Origin: Chara braunii
Lineage: Eukaryota > Plantae > Charophyceae
Assembly (NCBI GenBank): GCA_003427395.1
Contig: BFEA01000012.1
Span: forward strand, 4,272,483 to 4,336,482
DNA length: 64,000 bases
Direction of reading: 5' to 3'
Below the pieces are notes generated by a model, which searched no databases, was not told the origin of the DNA, and saw only the letters and a list, made by a program, of their open reading frames with translations. Position 1 is the first letter of the stretch, and every line of letters begins with the position of its first letter. Shown here one piece after another: positions 9,016 to 55,398 of the stretch. Both the position numbers and the translations under genes were made by a program.

Positions 9016-12000
9016 TACTCTTTATACTACTGACAACGAGTGTCTACAAGTCCAGACTGGCAGTATCTCTGAAATCACTATCAGAAGTGGGAGATAATGT
9101 AGCTTCTCCACTATAAAAGCTCAAAGAGGAATCAGATTTCAAGATGACAAGAGGTCAAAGTCAATTGCAGATGAGATAATTGAGATAAAATCGTTCTTAA
9201 ATTTCATTTGGTGGCCGACGGAGTGGTTTGGTTCACAGGGAACCTGCATCCCCAGCCTTAAGGTATTCAAATACTCAAGCCAGGGACGCTATGAAGAATG
9301 ATCTGAAATGAGAAATCAAGAAGAAAAGAAAATCAAAGAATTAAGGGAAAGATGTCATGCTTACACAATAAATAAAAGACGATCATGAATTTGACATGTC
9401 ACAAATCAAAAAGGAAGAAAATACAAAAGAGAGTACAACTATTAAGATGAGACTGAGAGGGGTCAACCTAAGGGATAGAGTAAGATGAGGCAGACAATAA
9501 TGCCCTACTTATCACAGGGGTAGTAGGTGCTTTTGGATTGTATGGAGTGGAGCAAGTGTCGGGAGCGCCATAGCGCGCCCCATATTTCTTAAGATAATAT
9601 TTCAAATTTGTTGGGGATGAAGTTCTTTCGTACCACCCGGGAAAAGAGTGGCGTGGCTGGGCACGTGAGTGTGTCCCATGCCCATACCTATCTTATTCTT
9701 CCTCTTCTGAGTTGATGTGCTTCTGGCACGCGGTGCCGACTCCTCTGGAGCCTTTCCTCCTATTCCGCCTCTTCCTCTTCCCTGTCTCCGACGTGCTTCG
9801 GACATGGTGAAAAGAGAAAAGAGTACGATATAGCAAAAATGAAGATTAAGAGAAAATTGTGAAAGCAGGAAGGATTGCACTATTAAGGAAGAAAGAGGAA
9901 AGCGGCTTCGCAGATCGCGCAATAACACTGCACTATGGGGAAAGAAAGTGTGTTGCTATACACCGGGAAAAGTGTACATTGATTGCCAACGCAAAATAGC
10001 GACGAAAAGCTCCGCTATAAATCGCAGTAGGAATGACTGAATGAATGAACTATCGGTCCTCGTTGTTTTATACTAAACTACCTACTTCTTTTGGCCCAGC
10101 AGGAACGTTGGGCGGGGGTTTGGTATCATGTCAGAGGGCGCGGTGTCATGACCCTCCGCTGCGTACCAGGCGGGTGCTCACGGACCTCCGTTGTTCCCTC
10201 CACTGTGTACCAGAAACTGACTTATGTTTTCCTCTGCATATTAGCTCCCTGCTCACGGGGACATAGTGTGCCAGATCCCTACTTACAGGAACTGCAGCAT
10301 GCCAAATTCGCTTGGATTGCACCGTGCTGCAGGACTGGTTCAGTCGACGCTTCCACTCACAAAAGGGTGGGTGCGCTACTGGACTTTCCATTGGTTCACG
10401 CAGGCTTAGCGCCCTGCTGTACAGCAGAGCACAACCGGCTTGTGGCCGTGGTAGCTGCCAGGCTCACCCACGGACGTGAGAGTGGACGGATCTGCATGAT
10501 CTTTTCAAATACACGCCGAGTTCCTGTAGTCGGGTTATGGGATAAAAAACTAAAAAGGGGAAAAAAAAATATAAAAGGAAAAAAAGTGGAAAATGAGGAA
10601 GTTGAAAAAGAAACACCTAGTTTTGGATCTGTATATGAGCCTGAGCCTTGACAGTGGAGAATGCTGATACGACAACCGCCGTGTTCCTTTTTCGGTTTTT
10701 TCCTTTTGCTAGTTTTCATCTTTCACTTAATTCTTATGAATTTCTCATTCCCCCTCCTACAATCATTTCATGGGGGAACAAACGGTTCAGTTTCAAATTC
10801 TTGGTTATAAATAGGCGGCCTAGACTGCCCGACCTTTGCACTTAGGTCATCGTGATTTAACTGGTGAGGTGCAATTAGTATTGGGCTCAAAACGAGAGCA
10901 CCTGTGGCTGCATCAATAGGGGACTCATCACCCCCATGGAAAGTCATGAGCCCCCCCTTGCCATCGGACACGGGTACCTTTAGGAGAAAGCCTCTTGAGT
11001 CAACTTTGAAGGGAGGGGGGCGCCTGTTGGGATCCCCTTATGGGACTGTCCCGCGCCGACCTCACGCCCTTAGTCTTTTCAAACTGATTTGAGAAGCGGG
11101 CTAGGAATGAAGGTTGAAACCTATTCGAGCAACCGTTGGGGTTTGAGTTTCCCCTCTGTTGATTTTGTTGTCCATCGGAGTTTCAATAACGGATTAATAA
11201 AATTAGGAGAGTCGCTGTAGGTAAAGCCTATTAAAGAAAGGGAAATGTGGCATTGGCTACTGGTCAGTAGGTGTGCACAATCAACTTTGCCTTGCCGGTT
11301 TTGATGGTCTGAAACTGAAGAGGAGTGAGCAGGTGGTAGGCCGTCTGTGTGCGACAGCGTGCCGGGTACCAAACTCAGGCTATTTCGGGAGTGTGCAACT
11401 ATGTCCTTGCACGGTGTCGGTGCTAATACCCTTACAAGGGTATCTGCCCTGTTTTTTTTGCAAGAGACAGAAAATAAGTTTTGTTTAAAGTCTAAGTACA
11501 CCATGCGAGGCACGACTGAGTCTATGGTCTACGCTGACTGAATGGTTGACAAGAGCAGAGACTCAGAGAGTGTATGGGCGCGTAGACTTAAGGCGCGTGT
11601 GATCTGTTTTGTCTTTGATGATTGTGAAAGTCGGCATAGTCGCCGACCAGAATTTTGATTTATGATTAAAGCAGGATTGAAAAGATTTTGCCTCGTGATT
11701 GGTGTACTTGACGGTGACTTGTGCGTACGTACGAAGGATGATGTCGACGGCGGCATGGTTCGGTATAGTCGCGAGGTGGACGCGAAAGGTTAACGGTCGT
11801 GAGTTCTGTTGATAGGCCGATCTGAGGGTTTGAAACGTTTCGGTAGATCTGCGTGTTGTGCACTGGCAGTATCCATTTATTTAGGTTGCTTTTAATAGTA
11901 GACCCAGCCTTGGACCTAGTACTATTGGTTACGATGTTGGACTCTCATATGAGAGATTCTGGGATCGAGATCGAGAGGCGACGACGTGGGATATCAGAAT

Positions 12001-12280
12001 GGCACGGAGAGACCGAAAGGTTGAAGGCCAAACGGGGCTCTCCCCGTTGGTTTCGTCGTCGACAGAGTTAGAACAATGCTAACATTCTCTTTTTCCTCGG
12101 CCGTCATATTCTGACGATTAAAAAGTTCTAAATACTTTTATTATTTATTGTGTTATTATTATTATTTTGCTCCGGCGCTCCTTGACTTAGGCGCGACGCT
12201 GGATTTGGAGGTCGTTGCGACGGTCGAGGGCCTTGAGCACGAGCCTCTCTTTCGTTGACCTTCGGGTTTCTGCGTGTTCG

Positions 12281-12348
12281 GGATGCTCGCAAAATTCACT
12301 TATTCCCCCGTCTTGAAGCGTGGACCGAGGAGTTCAGCGTGCATGCGA
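12281..12348 (+). pseudogene. Degenerate 28S (LSU) rRNA fragment in copy A
   Basis: cccgtcttgaagcgtggaccgaggagt versus conserved LSU CCCGTCTTGAAACACGGACCAAGGAGT is 23/27, all differences transitions. The flanks ggatgctcgcaaaat and tgcatgcga also fit. Confidence 0.7.
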
Positions 12349-14682
12349 CCAGGAGAGAGAGAACAATCCACAAGGTGGAAAAGGAAACCTGGGTGGTGCG
12401 GACCTTTGCAGGTGTACCGCCCTCCAGTCGTAAATCGGCCGCGAAGTTTAAGTATGTGTATGCCCGCGAGGACCCGAGAGGGGGTAAGCAGTGCCCAGAA
12501 GGAGTGGTCCGGGGCACTGTGGAAAGGCCACTGCAGCAGCCCATCTGTGGAACCCCTCTCCACGTCGATCACAAAAGTTCTCTTTTGAAAAATTGCTATT
12601 ACCGCCAGTGGCCGCATCGAGCCCAGTCCACAAAGGCCCACGCTAAGCGTCACGGTTGCAAAAGGCCACGTTGCGACCGACTGCCTGTGTGAGAGCTGGT
12701 TGTTCGAGGTCGAGGTGGTAGTGAACTCCGCCTGGACAGAACGAGAGGGGGAGGCTGGGACGGAGCCAGCCCGTGCAAATCGTTCGTCGAGCTTGGGCAT
12801 AGGCGGCGAGAGACTACTAGAGCCAACCTGTAACAGTTCTGAAGTTTCCCTCAGGATCGCTGGAGCTATTGAACAGTTACCCGTCCGCAGTGTGGCCTGT
12901 CGCCGACAGAGTATGGCGTGGGCATCGAAGGGACGAGAGGAACGACTACGAAGACAAGGTGTGACTGCGCACAATAAGAAGGTTGTGTCTAGGCGCATAC
13001 GGGAAGTAGAGGGCAACGAAAAATACTGTGGCGGAGGACCAGAGAAACAGATGAGGAGTCGGAATGAATGAACCTAGGCGGGATCCGCGCCCAGGTGCAT
13101 TCGGAAGTGAGGATGAAGATGGCGGAGTTGAACGGGGGCATGACGGGAAGAGAATTCGAGTTCTCACCCGATTCTTGACGAAATCGGGTGAACCGAAGTT
13201 GGAAGTTGGGGGTTTCAGGGCGGGCGACCCAGGATTTGTGACCGAGTTACTGTGAAAGTTAGTGTACGCGTAGGTTAGTAAGGAAAGATGTGCGCTAAGG
13301 CAACGGGATTATGATTATGATGAGAGGGAAGATTGCTTAGTTCAACCGTTTCTTGATAGAAACGGGCGAACTAAGATTCGTTTCGGGGGTTTTCGTGACA
13401 AACGAGTCTGATAATGAAGTTAACTTTAGAGGAAAACGACTAAGGTAGGAGCTACGACGAAAACGACGTGCACGAAGATGAAGAAGTGAGAGATTATGGC
13501 TGGAGTATGAATCAAGATTTTGCTCAATCCTTCATGAAATTGAGCGAGCAAAAAAAAGAAAGATATGGGTTTTCGATCATTATGAATTGAATGGCGGAGT
13601 CAACTTGAGTATTGGGTTAGTAGAATAGAGAGTAAATAGAAAATTGGGCTGCGCAAGGCTATCGGAGAGGATGCACATGGTCGGACGAAAAGGAAATAAC
13701 CCGTCCGTTTCTCGACGAGATCGGGTGAGGAAAGTCGTTGAACAAAAGTTTTGGGTTGCTGTCAGTTGGACGGTAGCATCGGTTCTGACTAAGAAGCAAC
13801 AGTTTTGTCGGCATAACTATCAGGTGCTGCGCCCGGGAATGGTTTAAAGAAGTAATGAATCTTTTCAATTTTTGTGAAAGATTCATACGGATTTTACTAT
13901 CCTATCGATGGAAGTGGTATCGGGCCACCTGCGAGATTGGAGATCTACTTGTTTGTGTAGCCCAATACGTGCGGCCTTCTGCACAAGTGAATCTCCCCAA
14001 CTTCCAGTAGAAGGGACAAATTGTCGAATCGAGGCCCCGCTACTGCATAGGTTGGTAGTCCTGCGGGTGCTAACTCGGTCCAGCCTGCTTCTGCTCGTAG
14101 CTGTGGTTGATGGAGTTATGCTCAATACTATTTTAAACCCGGTTGGTAGGTTGGCCAGATGCATGCAAGGTTTGGGAAGGAGAGGCCGGGCTTATTGTAG
14201 ACAGAACAGATGTATCGAAAGTTGACATGCTATGCCAGATTGCGCGTCAACAAGGAATAACAAGGAATAATGAAGGTCTGAGTGAGTCAGTTTTGTTTTT
14301 GGCAGGATGGACTGGCCACGCATGAAAAGAGTGGTGGACTAAAGGGAGAGGGTAAGAATCATTATGGTACTTGGCTGTGTTTCAGCGGAAGGTTCATCCG
14401 GTCACATACAACAGGTAAGGGCGCCGTAGAGGTTGGAGTCTCACTGATTGCGAGTGTGGCCGTGCCTAATAGTATTGTTGTCTGTTCATACCAACACTGC
14501 GTTCTGATAGGAAATAAGAGGATTGTACGAAGAGGACAAAAAAAAAAAAAAAAGGAGTTCAAGAGGGAGTGAGCCGACGGTGCAAGGAAGGGGACTCTTT
14601 GCTTCGAGTTTGGAGGATCGTCAGGAGGGTTAACTGTTGGCAATCGACTTCAGTTTGAACAGACTGCTGCGCATTCTGGCTG

Positions 14683-14940
14683 CCATTGCGGGGCCCTCGG
14701 GCGTATCCAGATATCAAGGCCCTCTCCTGGGAGTTGAGTTTGTCCCCGTCCTGTATCTCGAGAGTCTGAAACCCCTACTTTTGCCCTTCTTACTCTAAGG
14801 CTAATCGAGTTATGAGAGGAAGGCGGTATTGCAACCCGTAGGACTGCAACAAGACTTTGTGGGAGTCAGTCCACCGATTGCGGGAGCTCTGCCGGAACTC
14901 AGGAGGAGTTGTAGAGGCAGGGAACTGAAAGGTAACCATC
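14683..14940 (+). other. Conserved structured block of the large element ending in AG|GT(A) (copy A; homologues at 41425-41690 and 51803-52045)
   Basis: Conserved in all three complete copies while the upstream 2-3 kb is not readily alignable. Stems cctctc/gagagg and ctctgcc/ggcaggg. Confidence 0.65.
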
Positions 14941-15194
14941 AATTTCTTTCTATAAACCCTGTTATAACCCCTAACTGTTTTCATGACTATGTTTTGACTG
15001 AGTATACTGAGTGCACCCCTACTTTAAATTTTACGTTTGACTTTCATGACAAACCAGACATAATTAAAGGAATGATTGTGCAAGCTGCAATTTCAGTTTT
15101 TGTTTGTCTGACTGAAAGCAGATTGTGAGATTGCATCTGGGGGAAAGGTGGGGGGAAGACAGTTTTGCTTGTGTTTGACTAGGTCAACCAAAGA

Positions 15195-15722
15195 CTGGGA
15201 GAGTCTCCATAAGATTGGAGGACCCAGCGCTATGTTTATTTTTGATTGCCTAAAGGACCAGACAGGTTCCCATAAGATTGGGTGGTCTGATTGCTTTGAC
15301 TTGCAAGGGTTGTCCGTGCTTGATTTTCAAGGACCAAACATTTTTCCATAAGATTGGATGGTTTGGTCGCCTTGTTTTCTTTGGGGTTTCTTATGCTTTG
15401 TTAGTTTCTGAAGGGGAGTTAGGCACGTTCCATAAGATTGGATAACCCTAACTCTCTTTTGTTTCATTTCCGAGGAAGAAATTCAGGCAAAGGACTGGAC
15501 AGGTTCCCATAAGATTGGGTGGTCTGGTCTGGAGCCACGTACATGCTGGAACAAAAATGCTAAATTTGTTTATATCTTATATTACTTACTTATGAACAGG
15601 CTATTCAGACATTTTTCTATAAAATTGGATGGTCATACTATAACTTATCACCCACTAAAAGAGTATGAATTAAGAATAAAAATTCTGGTAAGAAGGGACA
15701 GGCTGAATCTTGATCTAAGATG
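15195..15722 (+). repeat. Array of stem-loops with TAAGAT loop (copy A)
   Basis: Loops at 15210, 15273, 15349, 15433, 15510, ~15620 (decayed) and 15716 (split by an insertion), plus one on the minus strand near 19660. Outer stems differ but pair (gaccaaac/gtttggtc, gagttagg/cctaactc). Confidence 0.8.
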
Positions 15723-16170
15723 CACAAGTGGTTAACGACCTACTGAAATTTTAAAATGAAAGATTCTGAAGTCTGTTAGCAGAGGTATGAAATCGGTGAA
15801 ATGGCATTAAGACACTTCATGTCATTTCAGGAGATTCAGGTGGTTTGAAAGTCAGATTTTATGTTTATTTTTCGTTTTGTTTTTTTTTTCGCCTATTTTT
15901 GTTTTGGTTCAACCATCAATGTTGTTGTGTGCCACTTGAGGTCATTTCAGGAGTTTCGGGAGGAGCCTGAAACCTCTGAAATGACCTGAAGTGGCTGAAG
16001 CTTCTGAAAGCGGTTTCAGATCTCCTATCCAAATTTTTGGATTGGGGCATATTAAACTTTTTTCAGACTTTCAGCCACTTCAAGTCATTTCAGGAGTTTC
16101 GGGTGGGGAGACCTGAAATCACTGAAATGACCTGAAGCGGCTGAAGCTTCTGAAAGTGGTTTCAGGTCCT
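15723..16170. mobile_element. Left piece of a satellite-containing insertion with 8-bp duplication CTAAGATG
   Basis: CTAAGATG at 15715-15722 and its reverse complement at 19843-19850. It contains the 148-bp repeat in the opposite orientation to 19905-21146. Confidence 0.7.
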
Positions 16171-16694
16171 TCGTTTTTTGAGAGCCTGTTCTCTCTCTCT
16201 GTGATCATGATTGACGTCTGATTGTAACCGCCTAGCGGTCCTGGTCCCTCTGTCGCCTCGAGTTGGCCTCTGGGCCGCTTTCCACAGGCTCAGTCGGCAG
16301 GTGGTCCCTCCGCCACTGGTCCAACCCGTGCCAACACAGAGTCTTCGCTGCGCTCATTTCGCTCTGCCCCCCGAGTGCCTGTCTAGGTAAGCATGTTCTC
16401 ATTCTGTAGTATCGGTGGAGGTCTCCACCTCATGGTACTTGATTGTTACTTGGACCTCAGTCATGACGTTGTCTCACCGACACCTCCGCTTGGCTTTGTC
16501 TTTTGCTTCAGTCACGACTGTCTGCAGTTTCTGATCCGCTCTCATCTCTTCCTCCCTAGCCCCCTCGAAGTTGATCATTAACTTGACCTTTTCTCCCCCG
16601 TCATAGTTGAGCATCGAGGTAATCCACGGTCCCTGCCTTGACATCGGTCTCCAACGCGTTATGAGGTTTCAATAGTCTGACCTATACTAGCCGT

Positions 16695-17820
16695 TGCCGA
16701 GCGCATCGGTCCGGCACCACACAAAACGGGGCGGGACCCTCCCGGTCGCGTCACACAGGAGTTGGTCTTATCCTCGTTGTGAATACATAATGGAGCTTCC
16801 ACAAGCCGCTACGGCCGAGTGCGCCAGCCATACCTCTCGCTAACCCCTATGACAGGATAAGACCTATGCAAGGCGCGACTTACCTCCACCTTACAGGAGT
16901 TGTCACCTCTCTTTCATGGGCGTATCCCCACCGAGCTACCAGTCCACGGTACGAAAGCTAATTAGTTGCAATCGCAAAGGTGGACCATCCGATGGCGTTT
17001 CTCGTACGTTGTAGCATAGGGGGTACGCACGGTTTTACTTCTCTATCGGACCTGCACGCAAACCGACATCTTGGGGGGCTGAGGTCCCAAGCGCGACTCG
17101 TCGTTGGTCGACTAGAACGCATCCCACAAACAACGCGTACTCCACTCTAAAAAACATAAAAATAAAAGCACACACACATACGCAGACATAAAAAGACACA
17201 GAACAAGCAACGTGACAACACTCTTAGTCCCTTAGTAACCATCTCATAACTCTCCGACGTGGAAATCAGATAGGCGTCGCGCGCGAGACTTAGTATAAAA
17301 TCGCGCGGGCGAGGGTCTCCCCATATCGACTAGCAATGCATGAATACGTAAGCAATCGTAATGGCGTACTATGTAGTATCCATAATCAAGCGGTCCCTTG
17401 TGGATCCAAGTACCGCTTATGACACTCAAGTGTCAGACTCGAAGTATCGTGAAGGTCTACACCTTCACGATATTGCACGGATGAAGGAATAGTTGTGCGA
17501 CCACCGCGGCACCTCCGGTTTTTAGGCTAAGTGTCCCGGTAGGTAGGGCAAATAGGCTTTGCGCGGGGGGAGATCCCTATCATGCAGAGTCGAGGACCTG
17601 GGATGTCATAGACAAGGACCTCGAATCAAGGCCCAGGACCAACGTCCGACTAAAAAATCTTTAAGAAGCATACAACAAATAGGGTTTTTTTTTTTCCTTT
17701 CTCAATCTCAACCTCAATTAAACTCTTAAGTGTAGGCCCCTCAGGCCATGTGAACACCCAATATAGGTTCATATATATATATATATATGCCTATGGTTTA
17801 CCGGGCAGTTCTGTTTGTGA

Positions 17821-17866
<46 letters not shown>

Positions 17867-19850
17867 AAGGGAATAAGTATGTGACGATCACTTCTCACAA
17901 TCACAACGGGGACTTCTCACAGCCATATATATGTCTGTGATTGCAGACAGTTAAATCCAAAATCCGAACTACAGAACATACCTGCAATCACATCAAAGAG
18001 TCAACAAAAAGTCCACGCACTACAGAGAGTCAACTTCAACCAATCTCTATACTCATACCCCTCGCTTTAGTCATGCAAGCCCCAACCTTCCATAATTAAA
18101 TACTTAGTACCTTTGTTAAATGGCCATTCAATAAAAGTCCGGGTGAAAATCTTAATAAAACAAAAAAAATCACCAGGGCTAAAGCCTTTTTAGGTTGAGT
18201 ATTGAGAATGAATTGGAGTTGAGTCGTAAACCAACGAATCGGCAACCGACTTGTTATCAGTGATAACAGAAGGTGATCCTTATAGGATCAAGCTGAATCT
18301 AGTCTTGATTTCGAATCAAACGTTTAAGAGGACCTGTAACACAAGACAAACAAATCCCCAAGCTAAATCTATGATTCCAAATCGAGAGTAATCTTCATAT
18401 CACGATTTCACAAAGGATCATTCTACTTAATTAATCTTGAGTCTACCCCTAAGTCAGTCCCTAATGAAAAGGTAGACCTTTAACAGAATCTTCTCTATAC
18501 AGAATGGATTGTCTAATCTAACTCCTCTAAACTAATAAAATTTCGGTAGCGCTTCTTGTAGGAAAAGTGTCTTTCCATAATTTATAATAACTCAAATATG
18601 AAAACAAAATTCAAACTCTAATTCTGGAAAGCCAAATTTTGTTTAATTCCCTGACTTAGTAAAAATTTGGGCATCATCTCCTTTAGAAAGGTAAACTTAT
18701 TAGATTTATACGAAGTCAGATAGAAACTCAAAAGTTATACTTGATTTCGATTTCAAGACAAAATTTAACTAACTCGTTAGATTTGTAGAAATTTTGGCAA
18801 CACTTCCTGTAGAGAAAGTGTTATTCCAAGATTTATACAGAGCTCGGTTCAGAATCTACGAAATGACTTTGACTTCTCAATGTCCAATTTTGTCAAACTC
18901 CCTGAATTAGTAAAAAAAAATTTGAGTAGCAGCTCCTTTAGAAAGGTAAACTTCCCAGATTTATACTAAGTCGGATAGGAACTCAAAAGTTAGACTTCAG
19001 TTCGACTTCAAGATAAAATTAAAAGACAAAATTTAACTAACTCCTTAGATTTGTAGAAATTTCGGCAGTGCTTCCCGTAGAGAAAGTGTTATTCCAAGAT
19101 TTATACAAAGCTAAGTTCAGAATTTACAAAATGACTTTGACTTCTCAAGGTCCAATTTTGTTTAACTCTCCGAATGAGCAAAAATTTGGGCAGCATTCCC
19201 TTTAGAAAAGAAGGCTTTCCATATTTTTATTGTGCCAAAAAGTCAGAAAAACTGGACCTTGGAAAAGACAAAATATGACTAACTCCTTGGTTTTGTAGAA
19301 ATTTCGGCAGCGCTTCCCGTAGAGAAAAAGGCTTACCAAGGTTTATACAAGATCAAGTATTAATAAATGATCCTAGAAAATGCAGGAATCGACCTAAGTA
19401 AAAATAAACTTAGCTCATAAAATGCAGGAATTGAAACTAACTCCTACGACTCTAGCACGTGGCGAGCAACTAAAGCAACTACCTATCAAACAAAAACTCA
19501 GACTAAGTAGTAACCTCACTCAGTCACATGCAGGTCAAAACCACGAAGGTAAGTACTCTCACCAGCCCAAAGGTCAACCTTATCAAACAATAGTTCATGA
19601 TCTTTCAATGATTTATTCCTTTATACCCAGCTTACATAAGGCATAAAGTTAGACCACCTAATCTTATGGGAACCTATCTAGCTTGGCCATAGAATATACA
19701 CAAACACAGAGCACTACAATTTTTTTCTTTTTTGGGCATATCACTAGGTTAGCCAGCCTAGTCGCCCTGGACCATTTAAGTATCAAAGTTATATATAAAT
19801 GTCTGCACTTTGTTTTTTAAGGCAACATATGACTGAACCGGTCATCTTAG
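16695..19850 (-). mobile_element. Large element copy A, 3' part (inverted)
   Basis: Terminus tgccgagcgcatcggtccggcacc. It matches the reverse complement of 42620-44700 and 45210-45952, and rejoins the 5' part through the CTAAGATG duplication. Confidence 0.85.
18530..19350 (-). repeat. ~240-270-bp internal tandem subrepeat of the large element (4 units; homologues at 43150-43700 and 53320-53620)
   Basis: The motif gaaatttcggcagcgcttcc(c/t)gtagagaaa recurs at ~18540, 18790, 19058 and 19298. Confidence 0.8.
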
Positions 19851-19904
19851 GAGAGAAAGTTAATAACTCGTAATATTTCCAAGTCCTTTTTCAGCCCCCC
19901 ATAC

Positions 19905-21146
19905 TATACCCATCCAAGCATTTGAACGGGGGAACCTGAAACCACTTTCAGAAGCTTCAACCACTTCAGATTATTTCAGAGGTTTGAGGTCTCTCCATCT
20001 GGAACTCCTGAAATGATATGAAGTGGCTGAAAATCAGAAAGCAGTTTCAGATCCCCCCATCCAAACATTTGGACGGGGGAACCTGAAACCTGTTTCAGAA
20101 GCTTCAGCCACTTCAAATCATTTCAGAGGTTTTAGGTCTCCCCACCCTAAACTCCTGAAATTATCCGAAGCCGCTGAAAATCTGAAAATGGTTTCAGATG
20201 CCCCCATCCAAGCATTTGGATGGGAGGACCTGAAAGTACTTTCAGAAGTTTCAGCCACTTCAGATCATTTCATAGGTTTCAGGTCCCTCCATATGAAACT
20301 CCTGAAATAATATGAAGTGGCTGAAGCTTCTAAAAGTGGTTTCATGTCCCCCCATCCAAGCATTTGGACGGGGGGATCTGAAACTGTTTTCAGAAGCTTC
20401 CGCCACTTCATATCATTTCAGAGGTTTCATGTCACCCCACCTGAAACTCCTGAATGGAGAGAAGGTTATCCATCTGAAACTCCTGAAATGATCTGAAGTG
20501 GCTGAAAATATGAAAGCAGTTTCAAGTCCCCCCATCCAAGCATTTGGACGGGGGGACCTGAAACCTCTTTCAAAAGCTTCAGCCACTTCAAATCATTTCA
20601 GAGGTTTCAGGCCTCCCCACCCGAAACTCCTGAAATGATTTGAAGTTGCTGAAAATCTGAAAGCGGTTTCAGATACCCGCATCCAAGCATTTGGATGGGG
20701 GGACCTGAAACCACTTTTAGAAGCTTCAGCCACTTCATATCATTTCAGAGGTTTCAGATCTCTCCATCTAAAACTCCTGAAATAATATGAAGTGGCTGAA
20801 GCTTCTGAAAGCGGTTTCATGTCCCGCCATCCAAGCATTTGGACGAGGGGGACCTGACATTGTTTTCAGAAGCTTCAGCCACTTCATATCATTTCAGAGG
20901 TTATAGGTCTCCCCACCTGAAACTCCTGAAATGATCTGAAGTGGCTGAAAATGTGAAAGCGGTTTCAGATGTCCCCATCCAACCATTTGGATAAGGGGAC
21001 CTGAAACTATTTTCAGAAGCTTCAGCCACTTCTAATCATTTCAGATGTTTCAGGTCTCTCTATCTGAAACTCCTGAAACGATATGAAGTGGCTGAAGCTT
21101 CTAAAAGCAGTTTCAGGTCCCCCCATCCAAGCATTTGAACGGGGGG
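19905..21146. repeat. Palindromic ~148-bp satellite, about 8.4 units
   Basis: catccaa(g/a/c)ca recurs at 19911, 20058, 20205, 20353, 20533, 20680, 20829, 20977 and 21125. Each unit has two ~60-bp inverted arms. Confidence 0.92.
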
Positions 21147-24100
21147 AGAGGTTTTTCAGCCATGTGCTTGGTTGAGAGGGGATCCTTTCTTCTTTCGTCC
21201 TTGTCGCAATGGGAATGCGCATTCGTCTTCTCGATTCGTGTCTAGCGACTCAACTTTCTTGAATAAGCGCATGAGGAAAGGACTTGCATGCATGCTCTGA
21301 GCACTCCATGCTCAATCAACGTGACAACGCTCTAGCCATTACGTGTGTGTGAGGGAGAGGGACTAAGGAAGAGCAGGTCGAAATCTAGCACATGAGAGGG
21401 GATGGAGTTCATTTTTACTGCTAACGTTTTGAATAATCACGTGGAACGTGTCTCTCCGCCTCAGGAGTAATGAAGTCGACAGTGAAAACTCTACGCTGAG
21501 CCTATGCAAGGCAACCCAAGTGGCGGGTCGGAGTCTACTAGGCAGATGCAGTCAAGAGACACGCGTCACATATAGGGAGGGAGACTAGGTTTAAAAAGAC
21601 TCGACGGGCGCTACTCCGCTGATGCATATATCATGCCCCGACGATGATCTTTTGGGTCATCTTCACCATAAACAGGATCTACTAGCGCATGGAACTATTA
21701 CTATCGCCATATTTTAGTTTTTTTTGAACAGGTGGATGAAAAAAACTTTGCGCACGTGCTTTGTGTATTTTGTATCTGACTGGTTTGGCATTGCACTATT
21801 TGCTGTACACTCTGAAAGTTGTATGTGAAGAGAAACCAGTGAGGGAGTGTGTGTGAGTACGCAGTACTCACGAAGAGAGAATTGAAATTTGCGCAAAAAA
21901 TCTGTGAAACCTACACAAGTGCTCTCGTTAGGTACCTTATATTCCCCTGTCGAGGGTTATCTGAACGACACTCGAACAAGATGTCTGCGCAGATAACATG
22001 GACAATTGTATCCCAGTTCTACGATGTGCCGTTTGGTCTCGAACATGTCACCACTCATCAAGCCGAGATGAGAGTTGACAGTGATGCAAGTCACTAGTTG
22101 GTGAAAAATTGTTTTCTCTTTTACGAGATGCACTAGGTACGGTAATAACACAAGTTGTTGATAACCCCCAAGTGATCTGAGAAGTCAAAACTGACATTGG
22201 GCGTTTGATATGAAGATGATTCCGCTAAGGTAGGCGGCTTGACCTTGTGCAATTAACTAGAGTTGCCTGCCCCTATCTATGCAAAGAGTATGACCCTACT
22301 ATGACCTTGAGCTACAACAATTATGAACACAACATCTTAGATGTCGACAAGGGAGGAATCACTTACTAGCTCAAACTCGTAAAAAAAAGGATAATGTGTG
22401 TCAAATTAGCTAACGACATCACGAAATCAAAGGGAGATTCACGATTCGATTATTGTTATTATTATCTAAGCATGTTTGCTACCCAGATGATGCAGTCTTG
22501 TCGGTTGTTGATAATGCAATGAGAGGGGAGACAACGCTACGCTCGACAAAAGATGCGTTTGGTTCTCACTATGTGATTCGGTAGATGGATCTATGTTTTT
22601 TACGCTGTATGCATAAGTATGACAAAGGGGGACTGAAGTCATAAGAGTGGTCAGTCTCAACTTACCTCTTTGGAGGATATGTAACACCTATGAAAGAAAC
22701 TCGTACAATTATATGAGCGTGTGATCTTACGAGTCTACAAATACTCATATGATCGCATGATTGTGCAACCGGATGAGCTCGCGGGCACTCAAGCGGATGA
22801 CTATGCGGTCTATAGATACTTGTGTGACTGCATGAGTGTGGGATCATACTAGCCTATGAATACTAGAATACAAGTGTCGGGGTGACTGTGATCTTTCAAG
22901 ACCCAGTGTCACCGCAGTAGTCTATAAAATCCTGTGTAAACCTGTGAGCGCGCGTTTGAGCCTACAGGCAAGGCTGTTAACTTAATCCGTCATTCTGGCT
23001 GTCTCTAGACGTGTGATTGAGATCAATCTTCTGTGAGTGCCGGATATGAGTAATGAGTCGTAGGGGAAGGAAACGATAGTTAAGAAAAATTATTTATCTA
23101 ATCGTTAAGTTTCTACTTTATGGGGTTTAATATTAGTTGCAATTAATGCTTCGAACACTGAAAGAAATTGATTAGTTTGCCTATGACGGTGATACACTAT
23201 CTATTACGTGGCACTGTATGTTGGGCACTAGCCAAAGACAAAGAAACCTTTATAGCCTTCGATGTTAAAAGGTTTCACGGCTCGGATAAGATTGTGTAAA
23301 GTATTTTGCCTTCCTTTCCGATCGTATTCTTGAGCGTTCTTAAGACCTTTGAGAAGTACGATTCGGTGAAACTTAAGGATGGTCACATAAATGTCAGGAA
23401 ACCCCATGAAATGAGGGCCATGAGCACTCCCAATTTCCCCTAGCTACAAATGAGCGTTTTGTTGCCTAGAAACTGAAGAGGGTGCGCCGTTGGTCTGAAG
23501 CGCTTGTTGCCTAGAAACTGAGGTGGTTTTACCTTCGGTCTCCCTCTGGCCCGCTCTACTAGCGTTTTTCGTTACCTGGGGGCAGGATTGCATTACCCGT
23601 CGTGATCTGATCAGAAGGGGACAAAAATTATATGTATGAAGTCATCGATTCCTAGGTCCCATATCAAAAGCACTAGTGAGAAAACGTAATCAAGACTACG
23701 ATGTTGGGTATGAGCACCTTTCCTCACCTGACTCCAAAAACATGTAAAACGCTCAGAGTAACTTCTCTTTGTATAAGTCTAGCCTAGTGTTGGAAGCTCA
23801 ACCGATGAGTGGTAACTAGGCGCTTGATCCAAAACAACCTGAAAGGCTGAGAGATATTCAGCATACAATCTTCCACCTCTAATAAGCAAGCTACACCCGG
23901 GTTGCCTAAGCTTAGAATTTTCGCACTACCTACTGAGTATTCCGACTGCGGCCACTTCATGAGTGAGCAGAATAGTACTCTGAATTTTCAAGAAACTCAT
24001 CACAAGTTGTTACCCTGAGGAATCAACTCTAGTAGTTATCGGATGGTTTGGGTGGATAGCAGGGTTGTTGAATAAAAATCGAATTGTTGTAATTGTCCAA

Positions 24101-27244: not shown

Positions 27245-29905
27245 GCAAATTGGGAGGCTTCTATTAAATCTTATTCGACGGGCTTTCCCTGTTTAAAGGC
27301 AAGTAAGATGACAACAATAATGATCCTCATTGGAAGCTCTATAATAAAGTGGGTTAACTTTGAGGGTTGCAAGTCTCAAAAGCAGCTTGCTAACTGATCT
27401 ATTGCAGTAGGGTTGGCTGAGAGTTTTCAACGCCTTGAGGCAAGGCTTGCAGACAAGGACGAGGCTCATAAGATTGTAGATAAGTTGATTTTGGTCAGAT
27501 AAAATACAAAGTTGCTTAATTAAGCTCTACGCAAAATTTGAACGTCTTACCTTCACTCTTGGTTTGTCCATGTTTGAGGAGGACAAACTGGCCTGGTTAC
27601 TCAGGGAAACACCTAATAAGTACAACACGATCTTGTACATTGTAGGCCACAAGCACCGACGATTCTTTGGCAGAGCACCCTTGGACATGGTGGTTGCACT
27701 TGATGTTCAATAAACATCCTACTACTCATATAAGATTGTCTATGAACCTTGTCCCTTTGACACAACTCACAAGTTTTAAAGTACGAGTAAGAAAGATTGT
27801 CCAAAACAATATACGTCTTTAGAAATTCAAAGTGACCGCAAGCATCGTGACTTTTTGATATCAGATGACTAATCATATTGCTATTATTAAGAATGTAAGA
27901 ACGATATTTCACCTCATTGACGATATACAACAAGTCTGAAATCATGGCATAGTCTGATTCAAAATTGTGGTTAGGTTGCAGAATTTTAATGATGGCGCAA
28001 AAGATTGGGTTATGAGGCAACACATCTGCAATACCTTGTCACGTGGAATCAACAAAAAAGTAAGTATTGCCAATGGTAGTAAAAATGTCAGGTCCCTTAT
28101 TATCGCACGTTTTTTTGTATTACAATTCAAAGTCAAAACCGTGTATGAATTGAATGTATTTTACCAGCTTATCAATGAACTAATTTTGGGTCTTCAACCA
28201 TTACAATGTGTCATTATTTGATGACACGTATGGGAATATATACAGCTCTTTCACATACACACTTATTTATCAATTCACTTTCTCCACATTAATTTTTTTT
28301 TTCACCCTAACGCCTGTTTTCAAAACTTTCTGACCCTACCTTACCGTTTGTATTGAATATTGATGCAAATCAGTACGAATTTGTTGTAGTTTCTCAACAG
28401 AATGGTGAGATTAACCTGAAGGAATTGTATATTCTCATTTGTGCCCTCAAACAAATATGTACCCTCAAAATGATGAGATGAACCTGAAAAACTGCACCAG
28501 ATTTTGTAATAATTTGCATCATAGTCAATACGAATGGTATGGTAGGGTCAGACTGTTTCAAATCAACCGCCAGGGTGAGGACTTTCTTTAATGTGGAGAA
28601 AGCGGATTGACATATACGTGACGTGGTAGATTGAGAGGTCTCTATTAAATCTTATTTAAAGGGCTTTCCCTGTCCAAAGGCAGGTAAGATAACAACAACA
28701 GTGACCCTCATTGAAAGCTATGCACTATAGTGGGTTAACTTTGAGGCTTGCAGAAAAAGAGAAGCCTCATAAGACTGTAGATAAGTTGATTTTGATAAGA
28801 TAAAATACAGAGTTGCTTAATTAAACTCTGTGCAAAATTTGAACGCCTTACCTTCACTTTTGGTTTGTCCATGTTTGAGGAGGATAAGTTGGCCTGCTTA
28901 CTCAAGACAACACCTAAGAAGTACAACACGACCTTGTACACTGAAGAACACAAGTACCGACGGTTCTTTGGCCGAACACCCTTGGACATGATGATTGCAC
29001 TTTATATTCAATCCACTTCCTCATACTCATATAAGATTGTCTATGAACCTTATCGCTTTGACATACTCATAAGTTTTCAAGTACGAGTAGAAAGGTTCTC
29101 CAAGAACAATAAAGGACTTTAGAAATTCAAAGTGGGCACGAACGTCATGACTCTTTGATATTAGATGACTGAACATATTACTATTATTAGGAATGTAGAA
29201 ACATTATTTCCCCTTATCAACAATATACAACAAGTCTAAAGTCATGACATGGTCTGACTCACAATTGGGGTTAGATTGCATAATTATATTGATGGAGCCA
29301 AAGATTGGCTTATGAGGCAACACATCTGCAATGTCTTTTCAGGTGGAATCAACAAAAAAGTAAGTATTGCCAATGGTAGCAAAAATGTCAGGTTTCTCAT
29401 TATCGCACGTTTTTTTGTGCTTCAGTTCAAAGTCAAAACCGTTTATGAATTGAATGTATTTTACCGGCTTATCGATGAACTAATCGCAAATTTTCATCCA
29501 GTGCAACGTGCCACATATGAGATCATACAATTCCTTCACATACACACTTACATGTCAATTCATTTTTTCCACATTAAAGAAAGTTTTCACCCTAGCGCCT
29601 GATTTGAAACTCTCTGACCCTATCTTATCGGTTGTATTGACTATTAATGCAAATCACTACAAATTCGGTGCAATTCTTCAGCAAAATGATGAGATTATCC
29701 TAAAGAAATTATATATTCTCATATGTACCCTCAAACAAATATGTACCCTTAAAATGATGTTACGAACCTGAAGAACTGCACCAAATTTTGTACTGATTTG
29801 CATCATTAGTCAATACGAACGGTAAGGTGGTTCATAGATATTCAAAATAGGCACCAAGATGAAGATTTGCTTTAAGATGAAAAAAGTGAATTAACATATA
29901 CGTAT
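27245..29905. repeat. ~1.3-kb tandem duplication of scrambled Gypsy fragments
   Basis: 27250 matches 28632 and 28600 matches 29885. It holds an INT HHCC relic on - (HDACGHF...KTCELCQR) and an RH-linker relic on + (LKLSDP...INANHYKFGAILQQ). Confidence 0.8.
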
Positions 29906-32550: not shown

Positions 32551-32562
32551 TGGTATCAGAGC
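32551..32562 (+). promoter_or_regulatory. Primer-binding site for initiator tRNA-Met
   Basis: TGGTATCAGAGC lies one base after ...GTCACA. The internal region disappears into the N gap. Confidence 0.85.
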
Positions 32563-32789: not shown

Positions 32790-33569
32790 NNNNNNNNNNN
32801 NNNNNNNNNNNNNNNNNNNNNNNNNNNNNNNNNNNNNNNNNNNNNNNNNNNNNNNNNNNNNNNNNNNNNNNNNNNNNNNNNNNNNNNNNNNNNNNNNNNN
32901 NNNNNNNNNNNNNNNNNNNNNNNNNNNNNNNNNNNNNNNNNNNNNNNNNNNNNNNNNNNNNNNNNNNNNNNNNNNNNNNNNNNNNNNNNNNNNNNNNNNN
33001 NNNNNNNNNNNNNNNNNNNNNNNNNNNNNNNNNNNNNNNNNNNNNNNNNNNNNNNNNNNNNNNNNNNNNNNNNNNNNNNNNNNNNNNNNNNNNNNNNNNN
33101 NNNNNNNNNNNNNNNNNNNNNNNNNNNNNNNNNNNNNNNNNNNNNNNNNNNNNNNNNNNNNNNNNNNNNNNNNNNNNNNNNNNNNNNNNNNNNNNNNNNN
33201 NNNNNNNNNNNNNNNNNNNNNNNNNNNNNNNNNNNNNNNNNNNNNNNNNNNNNNNNNNNNNNNNNNNNNNNNNNNNNNNNNNNNNNNNNNNNNNNNNNNN
33301 NNNNNNNNNNNNNNNNNNNNNNNNNNNNNNNNNNNNNNNNNNNNNNNNNNNNNNNNNNNNNNNNNNNNNNNNNNNNNNNNNNNNNNNNNNNNNNNNNNNN
33401 NNNNNNNNNNNNNNNNNNNNNNNNNNNNNNNNNNNNNNNNNNNNNNNNNNNNNNNNNNNNNNNNNNNNNNNNNNNNNNNNNNNNNNNNNNNNNNNNNNNN
33501 NNNNNNNNNNNNNNNNNNNNNNNNNNNNNNNNNNNNNNNNNNNNNNNNNNNNNNNNNNNNNNNNNNNNN
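32790..33569. other. Assembly gap (N run)
   Basis: Run of n characters. Confidence 1.
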
Positions 33570-36059: not shown

Positions 36060-36500
36060 TGTCGAGCGCATCGACCCCCGCCTTTTTTTGCAAAAGAGCG
36101 GGAGCCCTCCCGACCGTGTCATGCAGGAGTTAAACAAAAATTAAACAAGAGACAACTCGGGGACGCCGCATAATTAACACTGCGAACCGCAGAGACGGGT
36201 GTGGTCGCATTGTCCTTTCGCTGCTTTAGCCAGATGCACCTGCTGTACATCCCGCCGTCCCCTACGACAGGATAGGTTCCCGCGAGTCATAAGCTTGCTT
36301 CCCTTAGGGGTTATCACCACTCTTAGGGGCGTCTCCTTACCGAGCTACCGACCCACGTGTGAAAATTTTCACATACAGTTGCAGAGGTGGGTAAGCGGAG
36401 GGCGTTTGCTCGCTCACTATAGTATAGGGACGCGCAGTTAAAACGCCTATTGAATTCGTACGCCGTCCGTTCCTTAAGGCGCTGATCTCCTAATTACGAA
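36060..36500 (-). mobile_element. Large element copy E, diverged 3' terminus (inner boundary uncertain)
   Basis: tgtcgagcgcatcg terminus plus cccctacgacaggatagg, ccgagctacc and gcagaggtgg motifs. Flank is CCGT. Confidence 0.7.
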
Positions 36501-38546
36501 GCATAGGCCGATCGACAAGGATGGTCTTAACCAAACGTGAAACCTCCTTGTCCCTTCAAACACGAGTCAAAAGAAAATTATAACAATTACATATAGTTAT
36601 ACCAAAAGGAACCATACTTCGTCGATAAGAATGTATATCCCATCTGCAATGATAATCGAAAAAATCAAAATCATTATTAAATACACAAGATCAAAATAAA
36701 ACTCGACCACTCCGGGTCGAACTCCAAAAAAATCATACAACCGCCAACGAGGAGTTGACTTTCGACAATAATATAAATGCAGCCGACACGGTAGTCGGAC
36801 AGCCTTAGTTTTGATTTGATGAGATGCGCTGCCAAAGTTATTCATTCTAACCCACCGCCGATTTAAGACTAGACCCACATACCCGACTTCATACGTTTCA
36901 TAATCGTTGACATACTGCTTTGCGGATGATTCTTAGTCAGGTGCATTGCTTGAACTGTTGCATGCCTCTCGCTCTAGGAAGTGGTCTGGGGTACTCCTCC
37001 TCGCCCTAGCACAAGACCCAGATCTTAGAAGTCGGGCCGGCTCCACCGAATCGGCAAAGTACCCCCCCCCATAGAACGGTCCACTCTGGGTCAATAAGAG
37101 GGTCGACTCCTAAAGCAACGAACCCCCGCCCTAGATGCTTTCCTTGAGAGAGAGGATGTATTCACTCTAAGTAACTTTCAATTATTCTTATCTCTCCTAA
37201 GTTTAGGGTAACTTGGACGAAAAGAAGACAGAGGAGACAAAGAATGAGAATCATTTGAACAGGTACAGGCAGATAAGGTAATTCGGGATAAAACTGGTAA
37301 TCCTCAGGAAAAGACTATGTCCATTTGATCTTATCTGCTTTATTTGATTCGAATTCGTTTTATGGCGCACACAAAATTGACATTTTTCAAAACAACCAAC
37401 CCTTCTTGGCATGCAGGGAGGTGAGAAGTCAAAAGAAAACACTCCATTTCATTTTCTCAAATAGGCATAATCAATCTCCTTTGCAAGCATCCTTCTACCT
37501 ACCTGCACACACAAAAACAACCACAAACCCAAAAAATCCATCAACTCATACTTCGATATATTTTGACAGGACAATCTCGTTTCGTCTCGTTGTCGGTGTG
37601 GATACCCTTACAAGGGCACTTGCACTGTTTTTTTGCAGTTGACAGAGAAATGGGTCGATTCATAATTAGTGGGAAGACCCCGCGAGTCGCAAGGGTTTGC
37701 AGACTAAAGATTCGGCGGTAACATCTAGGATTAGAGAGCGTGTGGGCGCGCAGGTTTGAGACACGCGTGACTTTTTTTCTCTTTAATCGCAATGGACGAC
37801 GTGGAGTGGATTCTGATCGACGTGCTTCATTATAACAGTTGTTTGTTTTGATTAAACTGACTAACCTATGAGCGCTCTTTTCTCTGGTTCCGCGTGGTAC
37901 GGTGGACGGTCCAGTGAGCATGTGTGGACTTACGCGGAATCTAGATGATGGGACCCGATGGATTCGGTTAGGGAAGGGTGGCCGCGGCACGATAGGTCGA
38001 CACGGATTTTCCGGTAGTCTTTTGTGCGAATACGGGCCGGGAAGTGGCATGGGGCGGTTCCTTGGCCCCAAAAGCCGTGGATTACCTCTTTATTAGGAGA
38101 TTTGTGCCTATTGGTACCAGGCTTGGACTTAGCCCTATAAGTTACATCATCGGACTGGTACGCAGCAGACGCAGGGATCGAGGCCAACGACATGCAGTAG
38201 AGGAGCAGAGCGCGACGGAAGGGCTTGAGGGGTTGATGGTCTTATAAGACTATCCCCCTTCCCTTTTGCTATCATGTCCCCCCCGCCTTTTGCTATCACG
38301 GGGGACGAGAGGGGTGTCGTGGTCTTGACCCGACCACCGCCCGTATTTATATATATACATATATATATTATTTCATATTTTTTTTTTTACTATTATCATC
38401 GCGTTCGTATGTGGACGCGAAAACACAGAGGGGACCCCCACGAGCTGGGGAAATACAGACCCGTGTTTGAATCCGGGCCACATAACTTGGTTGCTGAGTA
38501 AAACCAAATATTCTGAGTCGCCTGTTGACTCGGCGACCCAGGCTCT

Positions 38547-52297: not shown

Positions 52298-52962
52298 ACT
52301 GGACATTGTTTTTAAGTTGAATGGCCCAGGGCTATGTTTATTTGACTGTTTTATGAAGGACCAGGCATTGTTTATAAGCTGAATGACCTGGTTGTTGTTT
52401 TTATTTCTAAGGGTTTGCCTTGTTGATTTGTAGGACGCATTATTTCTAAATAAATAGCTTGATCTGTCTGTTTCTTTTGGGGTATCTAACTAAATTTCGG
52501 CTGAAGAATCCAACTTCATGCTTTGATTGGTTTGAGGATAGGCTGAACATTGTTTCTAAACTGAACGGTTTAACCTTTTGTTTTATTTTTGAGGGAGGAT
52601 TTCTGGTCTAAGGCTAAGCATTGTTTCTAAGCTGAATGGTTTGGCCTGAAGACCATACACACGAGTATAAACTAAGTATAACATAAAATATTTTACCTAT
52701 ACTTGCATGCGAACTGGCAGTTGGACATTGTTTCTAAGCTGAATAATCCAACACTAAGTTATATCATTAAGAAGAGAAAGTAAAGTACTGAGTATAATTG
52801 AAAATAATCTGGGCAAAACTGAGCATTGTTTCTAAGTTGAATGGCTCAATTCGCTACCTGTATTTTTATTTTTATTTATAGAACAAAGTCAAAAATTTAT
52901 TAAATTTTGGATATTAAACAGTTCAGGGCGACAAGACATTATTTCTAAGTTGAATGGTCTAG
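52298..52962 (+). repeat. Array of ~7 stem-loops with cattgtttc-TAAG(C/T)T-gaatg core (copy C)
   Basis: Variable but pairing outer stems: accagg/cctggt, aggctaagc/gtttggcct, gttgga/tccaac and tgagc/gctca. Confidence 0.78.
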
Positions 52963-55398
52963 TTATATGCCCAAAGAAAATAAAAATAGTTGTACAACCT
53001 GTTCGTGTACATTCTAAAGGCATGTCATATGTAAGTTGGGTATAAGGGAGAACTCGTTTGAAAGTTTCATGAACTATCTATGAGGACTTTTGACTTGGGG
53101 ATAGTGAGAGTACTTACTCTTTGAGGTATGGCCTTGCATGTGGCTGAGTGAGAGTACTACTTAGTCTAAGTTGCAGTTTAGACATATAGTTATTTAAGAT
53201 GCTCGCCACGTGCTACAGCTATAAGAGTTAGTTTCAATTCCTGCATTTTCTGAGGTAAGTTTTCTTTACTTTGCTTAATTCTCGCATTTTCTGGGATCAT
53301 TTATTATACTTGGCTGCGTATAAATTTTGATAAGTTACTTTCTCCACGGGAAGCGCTGCCGAAATTTTTGCAAATCAAAAATGATAGTCAAAATTTGACT
53401 TTTCAAATTTCAACTTATCGAATTTTTATAAACGGCTTAGTAAAAATCTAGAACGTTTCCTTTTCTAAAGGGAGTATTGCCTAAATTTTTACTAATTCGG
53501 GGAGTAAGACAAAATTTGACTTTGAAAAGTTGAAGATTATTTTTGTTTTCATATTCGGGTTGATATAAATTCTGAAAAGACATTTTACCAGCGTGAAGCG
53601 CTGACGGAATTTTTTTAATTAGAGGAGATAAATTATATTTCGACATGTGGCGACTCTGACAATCCACCCTACATAGGGGAGATACTGTCAAAGGTCTACC
53701 TTTCTTTGGGCACTGGCTTAGAGGTAGACTCAAAATTTTTCGTGGAAAGGTTTTAGGTGAGAGTGTGAAATGGGGATTTATTCTTCGTACACATATAAGC
53801 TTAGTTTGAGAATTGACCTGTCTTGTGGTACACGTCCTTTTGATCGTTTCGGTTCAGAATATGACTAATTTCAGCTTGACCCTACGAGGATCATCTTCTG
53901 TTATCACTGCTAACGGGTCGGTTGCTTGATAGCCGACTCGTTGGCTCACGACACTATTTTGTTTACACCTGTACCTCTACTTGATTGCCTTAGCCCTGAG
54001 ATTTAATATGTTTCTTTGATGGTTTTAACCGGACTTCTTTTAATGACGATTGTAAAAAAATTATAAAATTTATGGAGAGTTGCATCATGACTTGAGTGTG
54101 AGGCGTGGTGTGAGGTACAAGGAACAATAAAGTTGACCACATTGGTGTATGACAATGTGGCTTTCGTTTGTGTCTATGTTTTATGCAGTTTAGTATTTTT
54201 GGAGCTTGGTATATGAGCCGTACCTTGGAGACAGTGAGAATGACAACCATATGTCACACGATCTACATACCTGATGGGCTTATGTTTCCCCTTCTTTTAT
54301 TTTATCGCACGTCCTGATTCGATATATGATTGTTGGGATGTTTATTTATTTATTGGGTGATTTTGCTTGTTAATTTTCATAGTTGGACGTTGTAGTCCAT
54401 GACAACCGTCAATGTCAAATCCTTTGACTTCTCTTCAGACCCTGGATGATAAAGTTGGTCTCCAGGGTGATAAGAAACGATTATCACCACAGGTATGAAC
54501 TTGTGTACCACCCACTCTCTGCAGGGTGCAGAAAAGGGTGTGGCTCTCAACCACACTTCGCGGTTGTCTAGCGTCGAGAGATGAATCCCTCAAGGATGTC
54601 AGCCGACACTTGAGTGTCGAATGCAACCCTCGAAATTAACGAGGACCACATAAGTATGGGTACTTTATAGTACGTCATTATTGCGACTGCTTGCGTATGC
54701 CTGCATTGAGAGGCAATATGAGTTAGCCGTACGTCCGTGCAGTTTTATACCAAGTCTCACGCGCGATACCTATCCGATTTCCACATCGAAGAGTTATCAG
54801 ATGGCAACTAAGGAACTAGGAGTGTTGTCACGTTACTTGTTCTGTGTTGTTCTGTACATGTGTATGTGCGTGCATATTTCAAGTTTCATGTTCTTAGAGT
54901 GGTGTACGCGTGGTGCGTGAGATACTTCCTAGTCGACCGATGACAAGTCACGCTTGGGACTTCAACCCCCTAAGATGTCGGTTCGCGTGCGGGTCCGATA
55001 GAGGCGTAAAACCGTACATACCCCCTATATGCTACAGCAATCGAGAAATGTTGTCGTCTGGACCACCTCTGAGATTGCAGCTGATTAACCTTCGTATTGT
55101 GGACTGGTAGCTCGACGGAGATATGCCCACCGAAGGGAGGTGACAACTCCCGTAAGGTGGAGGTAAATCGTGCCTCGCGTAGGCCCTATCATATCGTAGG
55201 GGCTCGCGAGAGGTATGGTTGGCGCACTCATCCGGAGAGGCTTGTGGAAACTCAATGTATGTTCGCGATGAGGATCACACTGACTCGTGCGTGACGCGGC
55301 CGGGAGGGTCCCCCCCCATGTTGTGCAATGCCGGACCGCCGCGCTCAACTGCACGATGTTGAGCATTCTATCAAGCTCGTGCCTGACTATCGTGTTCA

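Follow-up and report, generated by a model that had tools for sequence, protein, structure and literature searches.

The LARD elements of the Triticeae have long terminal repeats (LTRs) of about 4.5 kb. A survey of 80 plant species puts plant LTRs at 'each up to about 5 kb' and whole elements at up to 24 kb (PMC6317226), LTRs above 3 kb are infrequent (PMC3485330), and TR-GAG elements, which are gag-only, are <4 kb (PMC4350172). Among plant LTR retrotransposons, a preference for NCGN insertion sites has been reported only for the Phygy lineage of Physcomitrella (Neumann et al. 2019, PMC6317226), and tRNA-Asp is among the primer tRNAs used by non-chromovirus gypsy elements (PMC6317226). Here we analysed a 64-kb stretch of contig BFEA01000012.1 (hereafter the window), in which a reading of the letters alone (the sequence-only reading) had noticed a family of giant repeats with LTR-like ends and had proposed that they were either exceptionally long LTRs or a stand-alone, integrase-mobilised class carrying structured RNA. 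We conclude that these repeats very probably belong, as LTRs, to a gag-only, non-autonomous retrotransposon family of the TR-GAG/LARD-like kind, whose host is Chara braunii or a close relative.

The evidence that carries this conclusion comes from other loci. L005 (BFBZ01003667.1, a 6.6-kb contig) was the sole return when a degenerate 27-nt pattern of the family 3' end was scanned over a metagenome collection, and L006-L009 were then reached through Chara proteins matching a 245-aa open reading frame (ORF) of L005; the loci fetched through proteins all belong to assembly GCA_003427395.1. On a single strand, L005 reads from the final 247 bp of a family LTR through GG and a 19-nt primer-binding site (PBS) into 4.9 kb of further sequence and on to an LTR start (TGTC plus palindrome). 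L007 holds an element of 16.5 kb in total with an exact target-site duplication (TSD; TCGT/TCGT); it has inserted into an inverted LTR copy of greater age, which it splits cleanly at an ACGA site, 82 bp short of that copy's end:

L007 3295-7055, first LTR of the pair, 3.76 kb, with a 3.4-kb internal deletion
L007 13241-19781, second LTR of the pair, 6.54 kb, 93-94% identical to the first
L007 3210-3291 and 19782-20927, the two pieces of the older inverted LTR copy

The two LTRs of L008 (~7.8 and ~7.3 kb, lengths that include estimated gaps) are colinear and 93-95% identical, the element spans ~20.5 kb and its flanks, GCGA/ACGA, match at 3/4 positions. L009 has a gap-free 5' LTR of 6.83 kb, ~90% identical to its partner, and in L006 a gap-free 7.94-kb LTR lies downstream of an internal region. 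Two copies therefore flank a PBS-bearing internal region at L005, L007, L008 and L009, a positive outcome of the check that the sequence-only reading had proposed for giant LTRs. Family copies were absent from L001-L004 (~120 kb, fetched through gag-pol relatives), and no matches came back for an ORF, antisense and uninterrupted through four of the 3' ends, that served as bait for more copies.

The internal region of these elements is 4.9-6.2 kb long. Its 19-nt PBS, conserved in L005, L007, L008 and L009, always lies 2 nt past …GACA, and the complement of the PBS is identical to the plant small RNA miR8175. The CCA at the 3' end of miR8175 and its longer isoforms, which begin UUCGAUCC, mark this RNA as a tRNA 3' fragment; the primer is presumably tRNA-Asp(GUC). 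No tRNA gene for comparison with the PBS is present in any of the loci. A single ORF of 290-400 aa is conserved in the internal region; five elements keep it intact, and pairwise dN/dS values of 0.15-0.38 place it under purifying selection. One of its homologues is labelled a gag-domain protein in UniRef, and we tentatively regard the ORF as a possible gag. Searches with Pfam, and with tblastx against three gypsy pols, detected no pol in L005, L006 or L007, which argues that the elements are non-autonomous and gag-only. Since direct-repeat pairs at these loci flank a PBS-bearing internal region with a gag-like ORF and without pol, we read the units as LTRs: the first of the two proposals was borne out, and the second gave way to a unit that serves as terminal repeat in a gag-only element of 16-20 kb.

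Within the window, copies were called by self-comparison and by terminal profiles (first 70 bp; last 120 bp). The 70-bp profile placed three 5' termini, all on the plus strand, at 11415, 37591 and 48395 (E 1e-16 to 1e-18), each made up of TGTC and a conserved palindrome around CCCTTACAAGGG. The 120-bp profile placed six 3' termini reading …GCGCTCGACA, at 45952 and 55350 on the plus strand and at 6347, 16695, 46735 and 36060 on the minus strand (E 1e-22 to 1e-32). The sharp shared ends described earlier, TGTC and GACA, were thus recovered by both profiles (3 + 6 sites), and TGTC…GACA termini with short inverted ends (TG…CA type) are common to the window copies and L005-L009. The window itself is repeat-rich and eukaryotic, with a CpG observed/expected ratio of 0.85 (not CpG-depleted), and contains the following copies:

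6347..8500, minus strand, copy D, an internally deleted LTR (positions ~345-990, then one subrepeat, then the 3' kb; 3' profile, colinearity)
11415..16169, plus strand, copy A, 5' part of an LTR with palindrome-bearing leader, diverged region, conserved block and first hairpin units (5' profile; colinear with B 1-5024)
15807-16169, plus strand, first hairpin units of copy A (hairpin unit matches)
16170..16694, minus strand, putative former 3' flank of A/E, inverted along with E, 525 bp (fits a single inversion)
16695..21211, minus strand, copy E, probably the inverted 3' part of A's LTR (3' profile; colinear with B 5035-8362; Tandem Repeats Finder [TRF] arrays)
16695-17787, minus strand, conserved 3' kb of copy E
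19847-21211, minus strand, palindromic hairpin array of copy E, 147-bp units (TRF)
36060..36448, minus strand, copy G, 3'-terminal LTR fragment of 0.39 kb (3' profile)
37591..45952, plus strand, copy B, complete LTR of 8362 bp (terminal profiles; colinear with LTRs of L006, L007, L008 and L009)
46735..48137, minus strand, copy F, 3'-terminal LTR fragment of 1.4 kb (3' profile)
48395..55350, plus strand, copy C, complete LTR of 6956 bp (terminal profiles, colinearity)

Pairwise identity among family copies is 70-87%, and the similarity is mostly confined to the initial 60-200 bp, a block of 650 bp, tandem subrepeats of 244-268 bp and the last 1 kb. The coordinates given earlier for B (8362 bp) and C (6956 bp) were confirmed exactly; of the three complete and three partial copies then counted, A and E merge into one, and fragment G is an addition. 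No Pfam domain was found in any ORF within the window copies, in support of the earlier remark that they lack coding capacity. The family PBS was not found anywhere in the window, and the statement that no PBS or polypurine tract was visible accordingly holds for the window and fails at the other loci, where the PBS is present.

Copy B is flanked by TCGT and CCGT, a TSD of NCGN type that matches at 3/4 positions, and copy C ends in four degenerate bases (AACT) and has no TSD. The relationship of A to E follows from their colinearity with B, in which A ends at position 5024 and E begins at position 5035, with the hairpin array between them. At present 525 bp of unrelated DNA separate A from the inverted 3' part, after which comes the inverted array; palindromic 147-bp units lie at both A/E junctions (15807-16169, 19847-21211), and the 4 bp preceding A (11411-11414), ACGG, equal the first 4 bp past E's 3' end in element orientation. 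A single inversion with breakpoints in the hairpin array and 525 bp past the LTR end yields exactly this order, and A and E are best read as a single copy split by that inversion. Reassembled, A/E measures 9272 bp, or ~7.5 kb minus the hairpin array. The array folds strongly (z = -21), and B, C, the remainder of the window and nine further Chara loci lack it, a distribution that points to a private insertion in A/E rather than a family module.

The remaining copies are partial. The 5' terminus of D could be placed only between 8845 and 9035, where the match at 9035 is weak and was missed by the profile. The flank of copy F begins A-TGGCG, possibly a PBS remnant. Two full copies have an inverted, 5'-truncated LTR fragment immediately upstream, B with G (36060-37590) and C with F (46735-48394), and LTRs of the family may be favoured targets for its own insertion.

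We also examined what fills LTRs of this length. The parts recognised within them are:

41397..42049, plus strand, conserved block in B (73% mean column identity over 6 copies)
14652-15298 in A and 51786-52405 in C, equivalents of the conserved block, which is also present in L006 (two copies) and L007
42625..44372, plus strand, tandem subrepeats of ~244-268 bp in B (TRF)
17847-19838 in E (268-bp units) and 53022-53924 in C, equivalents of the subrepeats
44986..45952, plus strand, conserved 3' kb of copy B, presumably promoter/R/U5 (75-87% identity across all six 3' ends)
38547..38647, plus strand, segment in B derived from U6 small nuclear RNA (snRNA) (Rfam U6, 46.4 bits)

Between leader and conserved block lie 2-3 kb in which copies share colinear patches at only 58-72% identity. 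The variable region of the sequence-only reading is thus present, and its patches indicate that it is homologous across copies and fast-evolving rather than composed of foreign insertions. The length of the LTR appears to stem from this U3-like region of 2-3 kb, the conserved block and the tandem subrepeats, not from nested foreign elements. Conserved termini and 3' kb around a fast-diverging middle with subrepeats are the usual pattern of LTR conservation.

The RNA-like modules are confined to particular copies. The LTR of L005 carries the same U6 module as B (Rfam 57.3 bits; L005 225-480, minus strand), and in both a tRNA-T-arm-like stretch (GTTCGAATCC) precedes the U6 piece, giving a module at 38420-38647 (plus strand) in B. 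It sits ~1 kb from the LTR 5' end in this one subfamily and looks like a Pol III transcript captured during reverse transcription. Rfam U6 was not found in A, C, D or L006-L009, and of the noncoding RNA fragment reported earlier for A, B and D, only that in B (U6, 46 bits) has Rfam support. Covariation in the conserved block is negligible (a term of -2.25 of -54.3 kcal/mol). With the hairpin array present only in A/E and U6 only in B and L005, the fixed modular RNA architecture that had been proposed falls away.

These observations bear on whether the 7-9 kb unit could itself be a noncoding, non-autonomous element with TG…CA ends that is mobilised by an integrase and carries structured RNA. 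A/E and B do stand singly, between 4-bp TSD-like flanks and with no internal region, as such an element would; however, solo LTRs left by LTR-LTR recombination likewise retain a TSD. A single unit has no PBS or polypurine tract of its own, its structured-RNA modules are not common to the copies, and copies are paired around a PBS-gag region at four loci, with a 7.94-kb copy following such a region at a fifth (L006). We consider a stand-alone unit extremely unlikely.

Insertion sites gave a further character of the family. NCGN was present as TSD or flank in 8/11 independent insertions (A/E, B, D, G, L006, L007, L008 and the older copy that the L007 element splits); with CG at a frequency of 0.044 in the window, p is ~2e-9. 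TSDs of 4 bp are exact in L007 (TCGT) and A/E (ACGG), match at 3/4 positions in L008 and B, and are lacking for C. The NCGN preference and the type of PBS would point to a partner among non-chromovirus Ty3/gypsy elements.

The same flanks enter the case for a Penelope-like retroelement that moves by target-primed reverse transcription, or for a foldback-type DNA transposon. Under either, one might cite the excess of 3' over 5' ends, the inverted 5'-truncated copy (D, G, F) upstream of each full copy (A, B, C) in 3/3 cases in the window, and the identical outer flanks of the composite G…B (CCGT/CCGT). But a preference for NCGN would itself lead one to expect the CCGT match, F is no nearer to C, and G no nearer to B, than to other copies, and the inverted fragment in L007 is an older copy split by a nested insertion. 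The family ORFs include neither a reverse transcriptase (RT) with GIY-YIG nor a transposase, and the other loci show the hallmarks of an LTR element, namely paired direct repeats, a tRNA PBS and a 4-bp TSD. We give these two mechanisms almost no credence.

A third alternative concerns the immediate neighbours of the family copies, which include Ty3/gypsy elements on both sides:

about 1-5926, minus strand, degenerate Ty3/gypsy element (gag, protease, RT, RNase H, integrase) that has a U5 of its own at 5824-5917 and a tRNA-iMet-type PBS at 5816-5826
55475-58643, plus strand, Ty3/gypsy pol remnant of another family, with RT, RNase H, integrase zinc domain and SH3 domain, 125 bp past C

On this account the copies would be LTRs of an autonomous element within the window, D being the 5' LTR of the left gag-pol or C that of the right pol, and the order of parts is suggestive: gag, protease, RT, RNase H and integrase come after D on the minus strand, and RT, RNase H and integrase begin 125 bp past C. 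The left gag-pol, however, has its own U5 and PBS 523 bp beyond D's end, so D appears merely to abut or interrupt that element's LTR, and the element itself is unrelated to the giant-LTR family. It is ~70% identical to intact elements in L001-L004 (U5 87-91% identical to relatives), of which L001 and L002 bear unrelated LTRs of 2.35 kb (TGTGACG…GCGTCACA) with a tRNA-iMet-type PBS and TSDs, AGGT and GTGT, that are not NCGN. D as the 5' LTR of the adjacent gag-pol was rejected on the placement of U5 and PBS in these intact relatives. As for C, it has no PBS after it, and the pol to its right shares only 28-35% identity with the left one. That the copies belong to either neighbour is very unlikely. 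A gag fragment at 5217-5924 (minus strand) matches solely Chara braunii proteins, at 72-78% identity, in keeping with the window's assignment to Chara braunii or a close relative, and when the remainder of the left gypsy LTR was sought in the window by profile, only the last 100 bp matched.

Turning to the gag-only family itself, several points weigh against our reading of the window copies as its LTRs. None of them adjoins a PBS or internal region within the window, so their status as LTRs rests on 75-87% homology to LTRs elsewhere; C has no TSD, and that of B has one mismatch. There is a weak resemblance between the 15 nt before A and the conserved stretch found ahead of 3' LTRs; if this is real, A was a 3' LTR and the ACGG match to the E flank is chance, and the flank of G also begins ACGGCT. 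The LTR lengths of L008 incorporate estimated gaps. As to the internal region, the conserved stretch that abuts the 3' LTR in L005-L009 is only moderately purine-rich, with no clear polypurine tract. Retrotrans_gag matches, in 4/7 ORF homologues, have E 0.002-0.005 and fall under the Pfam curated cut-off, a PDB profile search with the gag-like ORF found nothing, and its AlphaFold model is all-helical and unreliable (pLDDT 44). No autonomous partner was found, and no pol is linked to the family in the sequences examined.

We propose that a full element would consist of a 5' LTR (TGTC…GACA, 3.8-7.9 kb), 2 nt, the 19-nt PBS, an internal region of ~5-6 kb with the gag-like ORF, the conserved stretch abutting the 3' LTR, the 3' LTR and a 4-bp TSD. 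By analogy with the standard LTR-retrotransposon cycle, transcription would run from the conserved 3' kb of the 5' LTR to the 3' LTR, minus-strand synthesis would be primed by a tRNA at the PBS, RT and integrase would be supplied in trans by an autonomous Ty3/gypsy element, and integration would favour NCGN sites. In the window, A/E would then be a solo LTR with TSD ACGG, inverted later across its private palindromic array, B a solo LTR (3/4 TSD), C a complete LTR with no TSD, and D, F and G deleted or truncated LTRs.

Other features of the window lie outside the family copies:

27443-29903, a 1.3-kb tandem duplication, near the following pol remnant
30237-30659, minus strand, Ty3/gypsy pol remnant of another family
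32551-32561, plus strand, canonical tRNA-iMet PBS (TGGTATCAGAG) directly after an LTR end, …GTCCGTCACA
32790-33569, assembly gap, between copies and outside every family copy
33834-33889, minus strand, type III hammerhead ribozyme with intact core (CUGAUGA…GAAA; 45.8 bits vs the Rfam cut-off of 48.5)
61320-61442 and 62504-62608, plus strand, two 3'-truncated U2 snRNA copies with A-runs (retropseudogenes)

The LTR end and tRNA-iMet PBS indicate that a further, unrelated LTR retrotransposon starts at 32551-32561, with the gap inside its internal region; no finding on the giant-LTR family depends on continuity across this gap. The hammerhead, immediately right of the gap, lies between direct repeats ~424 bp apart (33570…, 33993…) and may belong to a retrozyme-like or hammerhead-bearing tandem repeat. 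The U2 retropseudogenes are inside a 1.7-kb direct repeat (60415-60733 / 62163-62468). In the gypsy elements of L001 and L002, the final 8 nt of the 3' LTR (GCGTCACA) are absent from the 5' LTR/PBS junction (e.g. L002 9768, 18110, 20449), and the same 10 nt also occur just upstream of the 3' LTR start, in two independent insertions.

Pipelines that search for LTRs usually accept none longer than a few kb. Elements with LTRs of 7-8 kb would be missed or left 'unclassified', inflating the share of unknown repeats in an algal genome of 2 Gb. The present family would extend the known LTR size range beyond the survey maximum of ~5 kb, would show that a gag-only parasite is able to carry LTRs of such length, and suggests that the NCGN preference of the moss lineage is older or more widespread. 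Because the repeats are read as LTRs of a gag-only retrotransposon, the family is an extreme-sized case of a known kind of mobile element and not the undescribed system once suspected: what is out of range is the length of its LTRs. No description of the family was found in the literature, in a search that did not cover the Chara genome paper, Repbase or Dfam. More speculatively, and with the balance somewhat against it, this could be an undescribed charophyte gag-only lineage with the longest LTRs so far recorded in the green lineage (<=8.4 kb gap-free), Phygy-like NCGN integration and a subfamily whose U6 and tRNA-like module possibly spreads Pol III-type gene copies.

Compared with described systems, the family recalls the large plant non-chromovirus Ty3/gypsy elements of the Ogre/Tat/Athila group, which have very long LTRs with tandem subrepeats, large noncoding regions, a non-Met tRNA PBS and 4-5 bp TSDs (PMC6317226). 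It differs in its gap-free LTRs of 6.5-8.4 kb versus ~5 kb, and it has no pol and hence no phylogenetic placement. Phygy shares the NCGN insertion preference (PMC6317226), found here in 8/11 insertions, but is short, autonomous and described only from Physcomitrella, and the likeness is one of target motif. As single LTRs within a 4-bp duplication and with no internal region, A/E and B resemble ordinary solo LTRs, from which they differ in size and, in A/E, also in the later inversion mediated by the inserted palindromic array. The family shares with TR-GAG elements (PMC4350172) a non-autonomous organisation, PBS plus TSD and a single ORF, which is gag in TR-GAG elements and weakly gag-like in Chara; TR-GAG elements are <4 kb, whereas the Chara elements measure 16.5-20.5 kb and their LTRs 3.8-7.9 kb. 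Like the LARDs of the Triticeae, the Chara elements are non-autonomous, with unusually long LTRs and a long internal domain; unlike the LARD internal domain, which is noncoding, theirs keeps a gag-like ORF under purifying selection.

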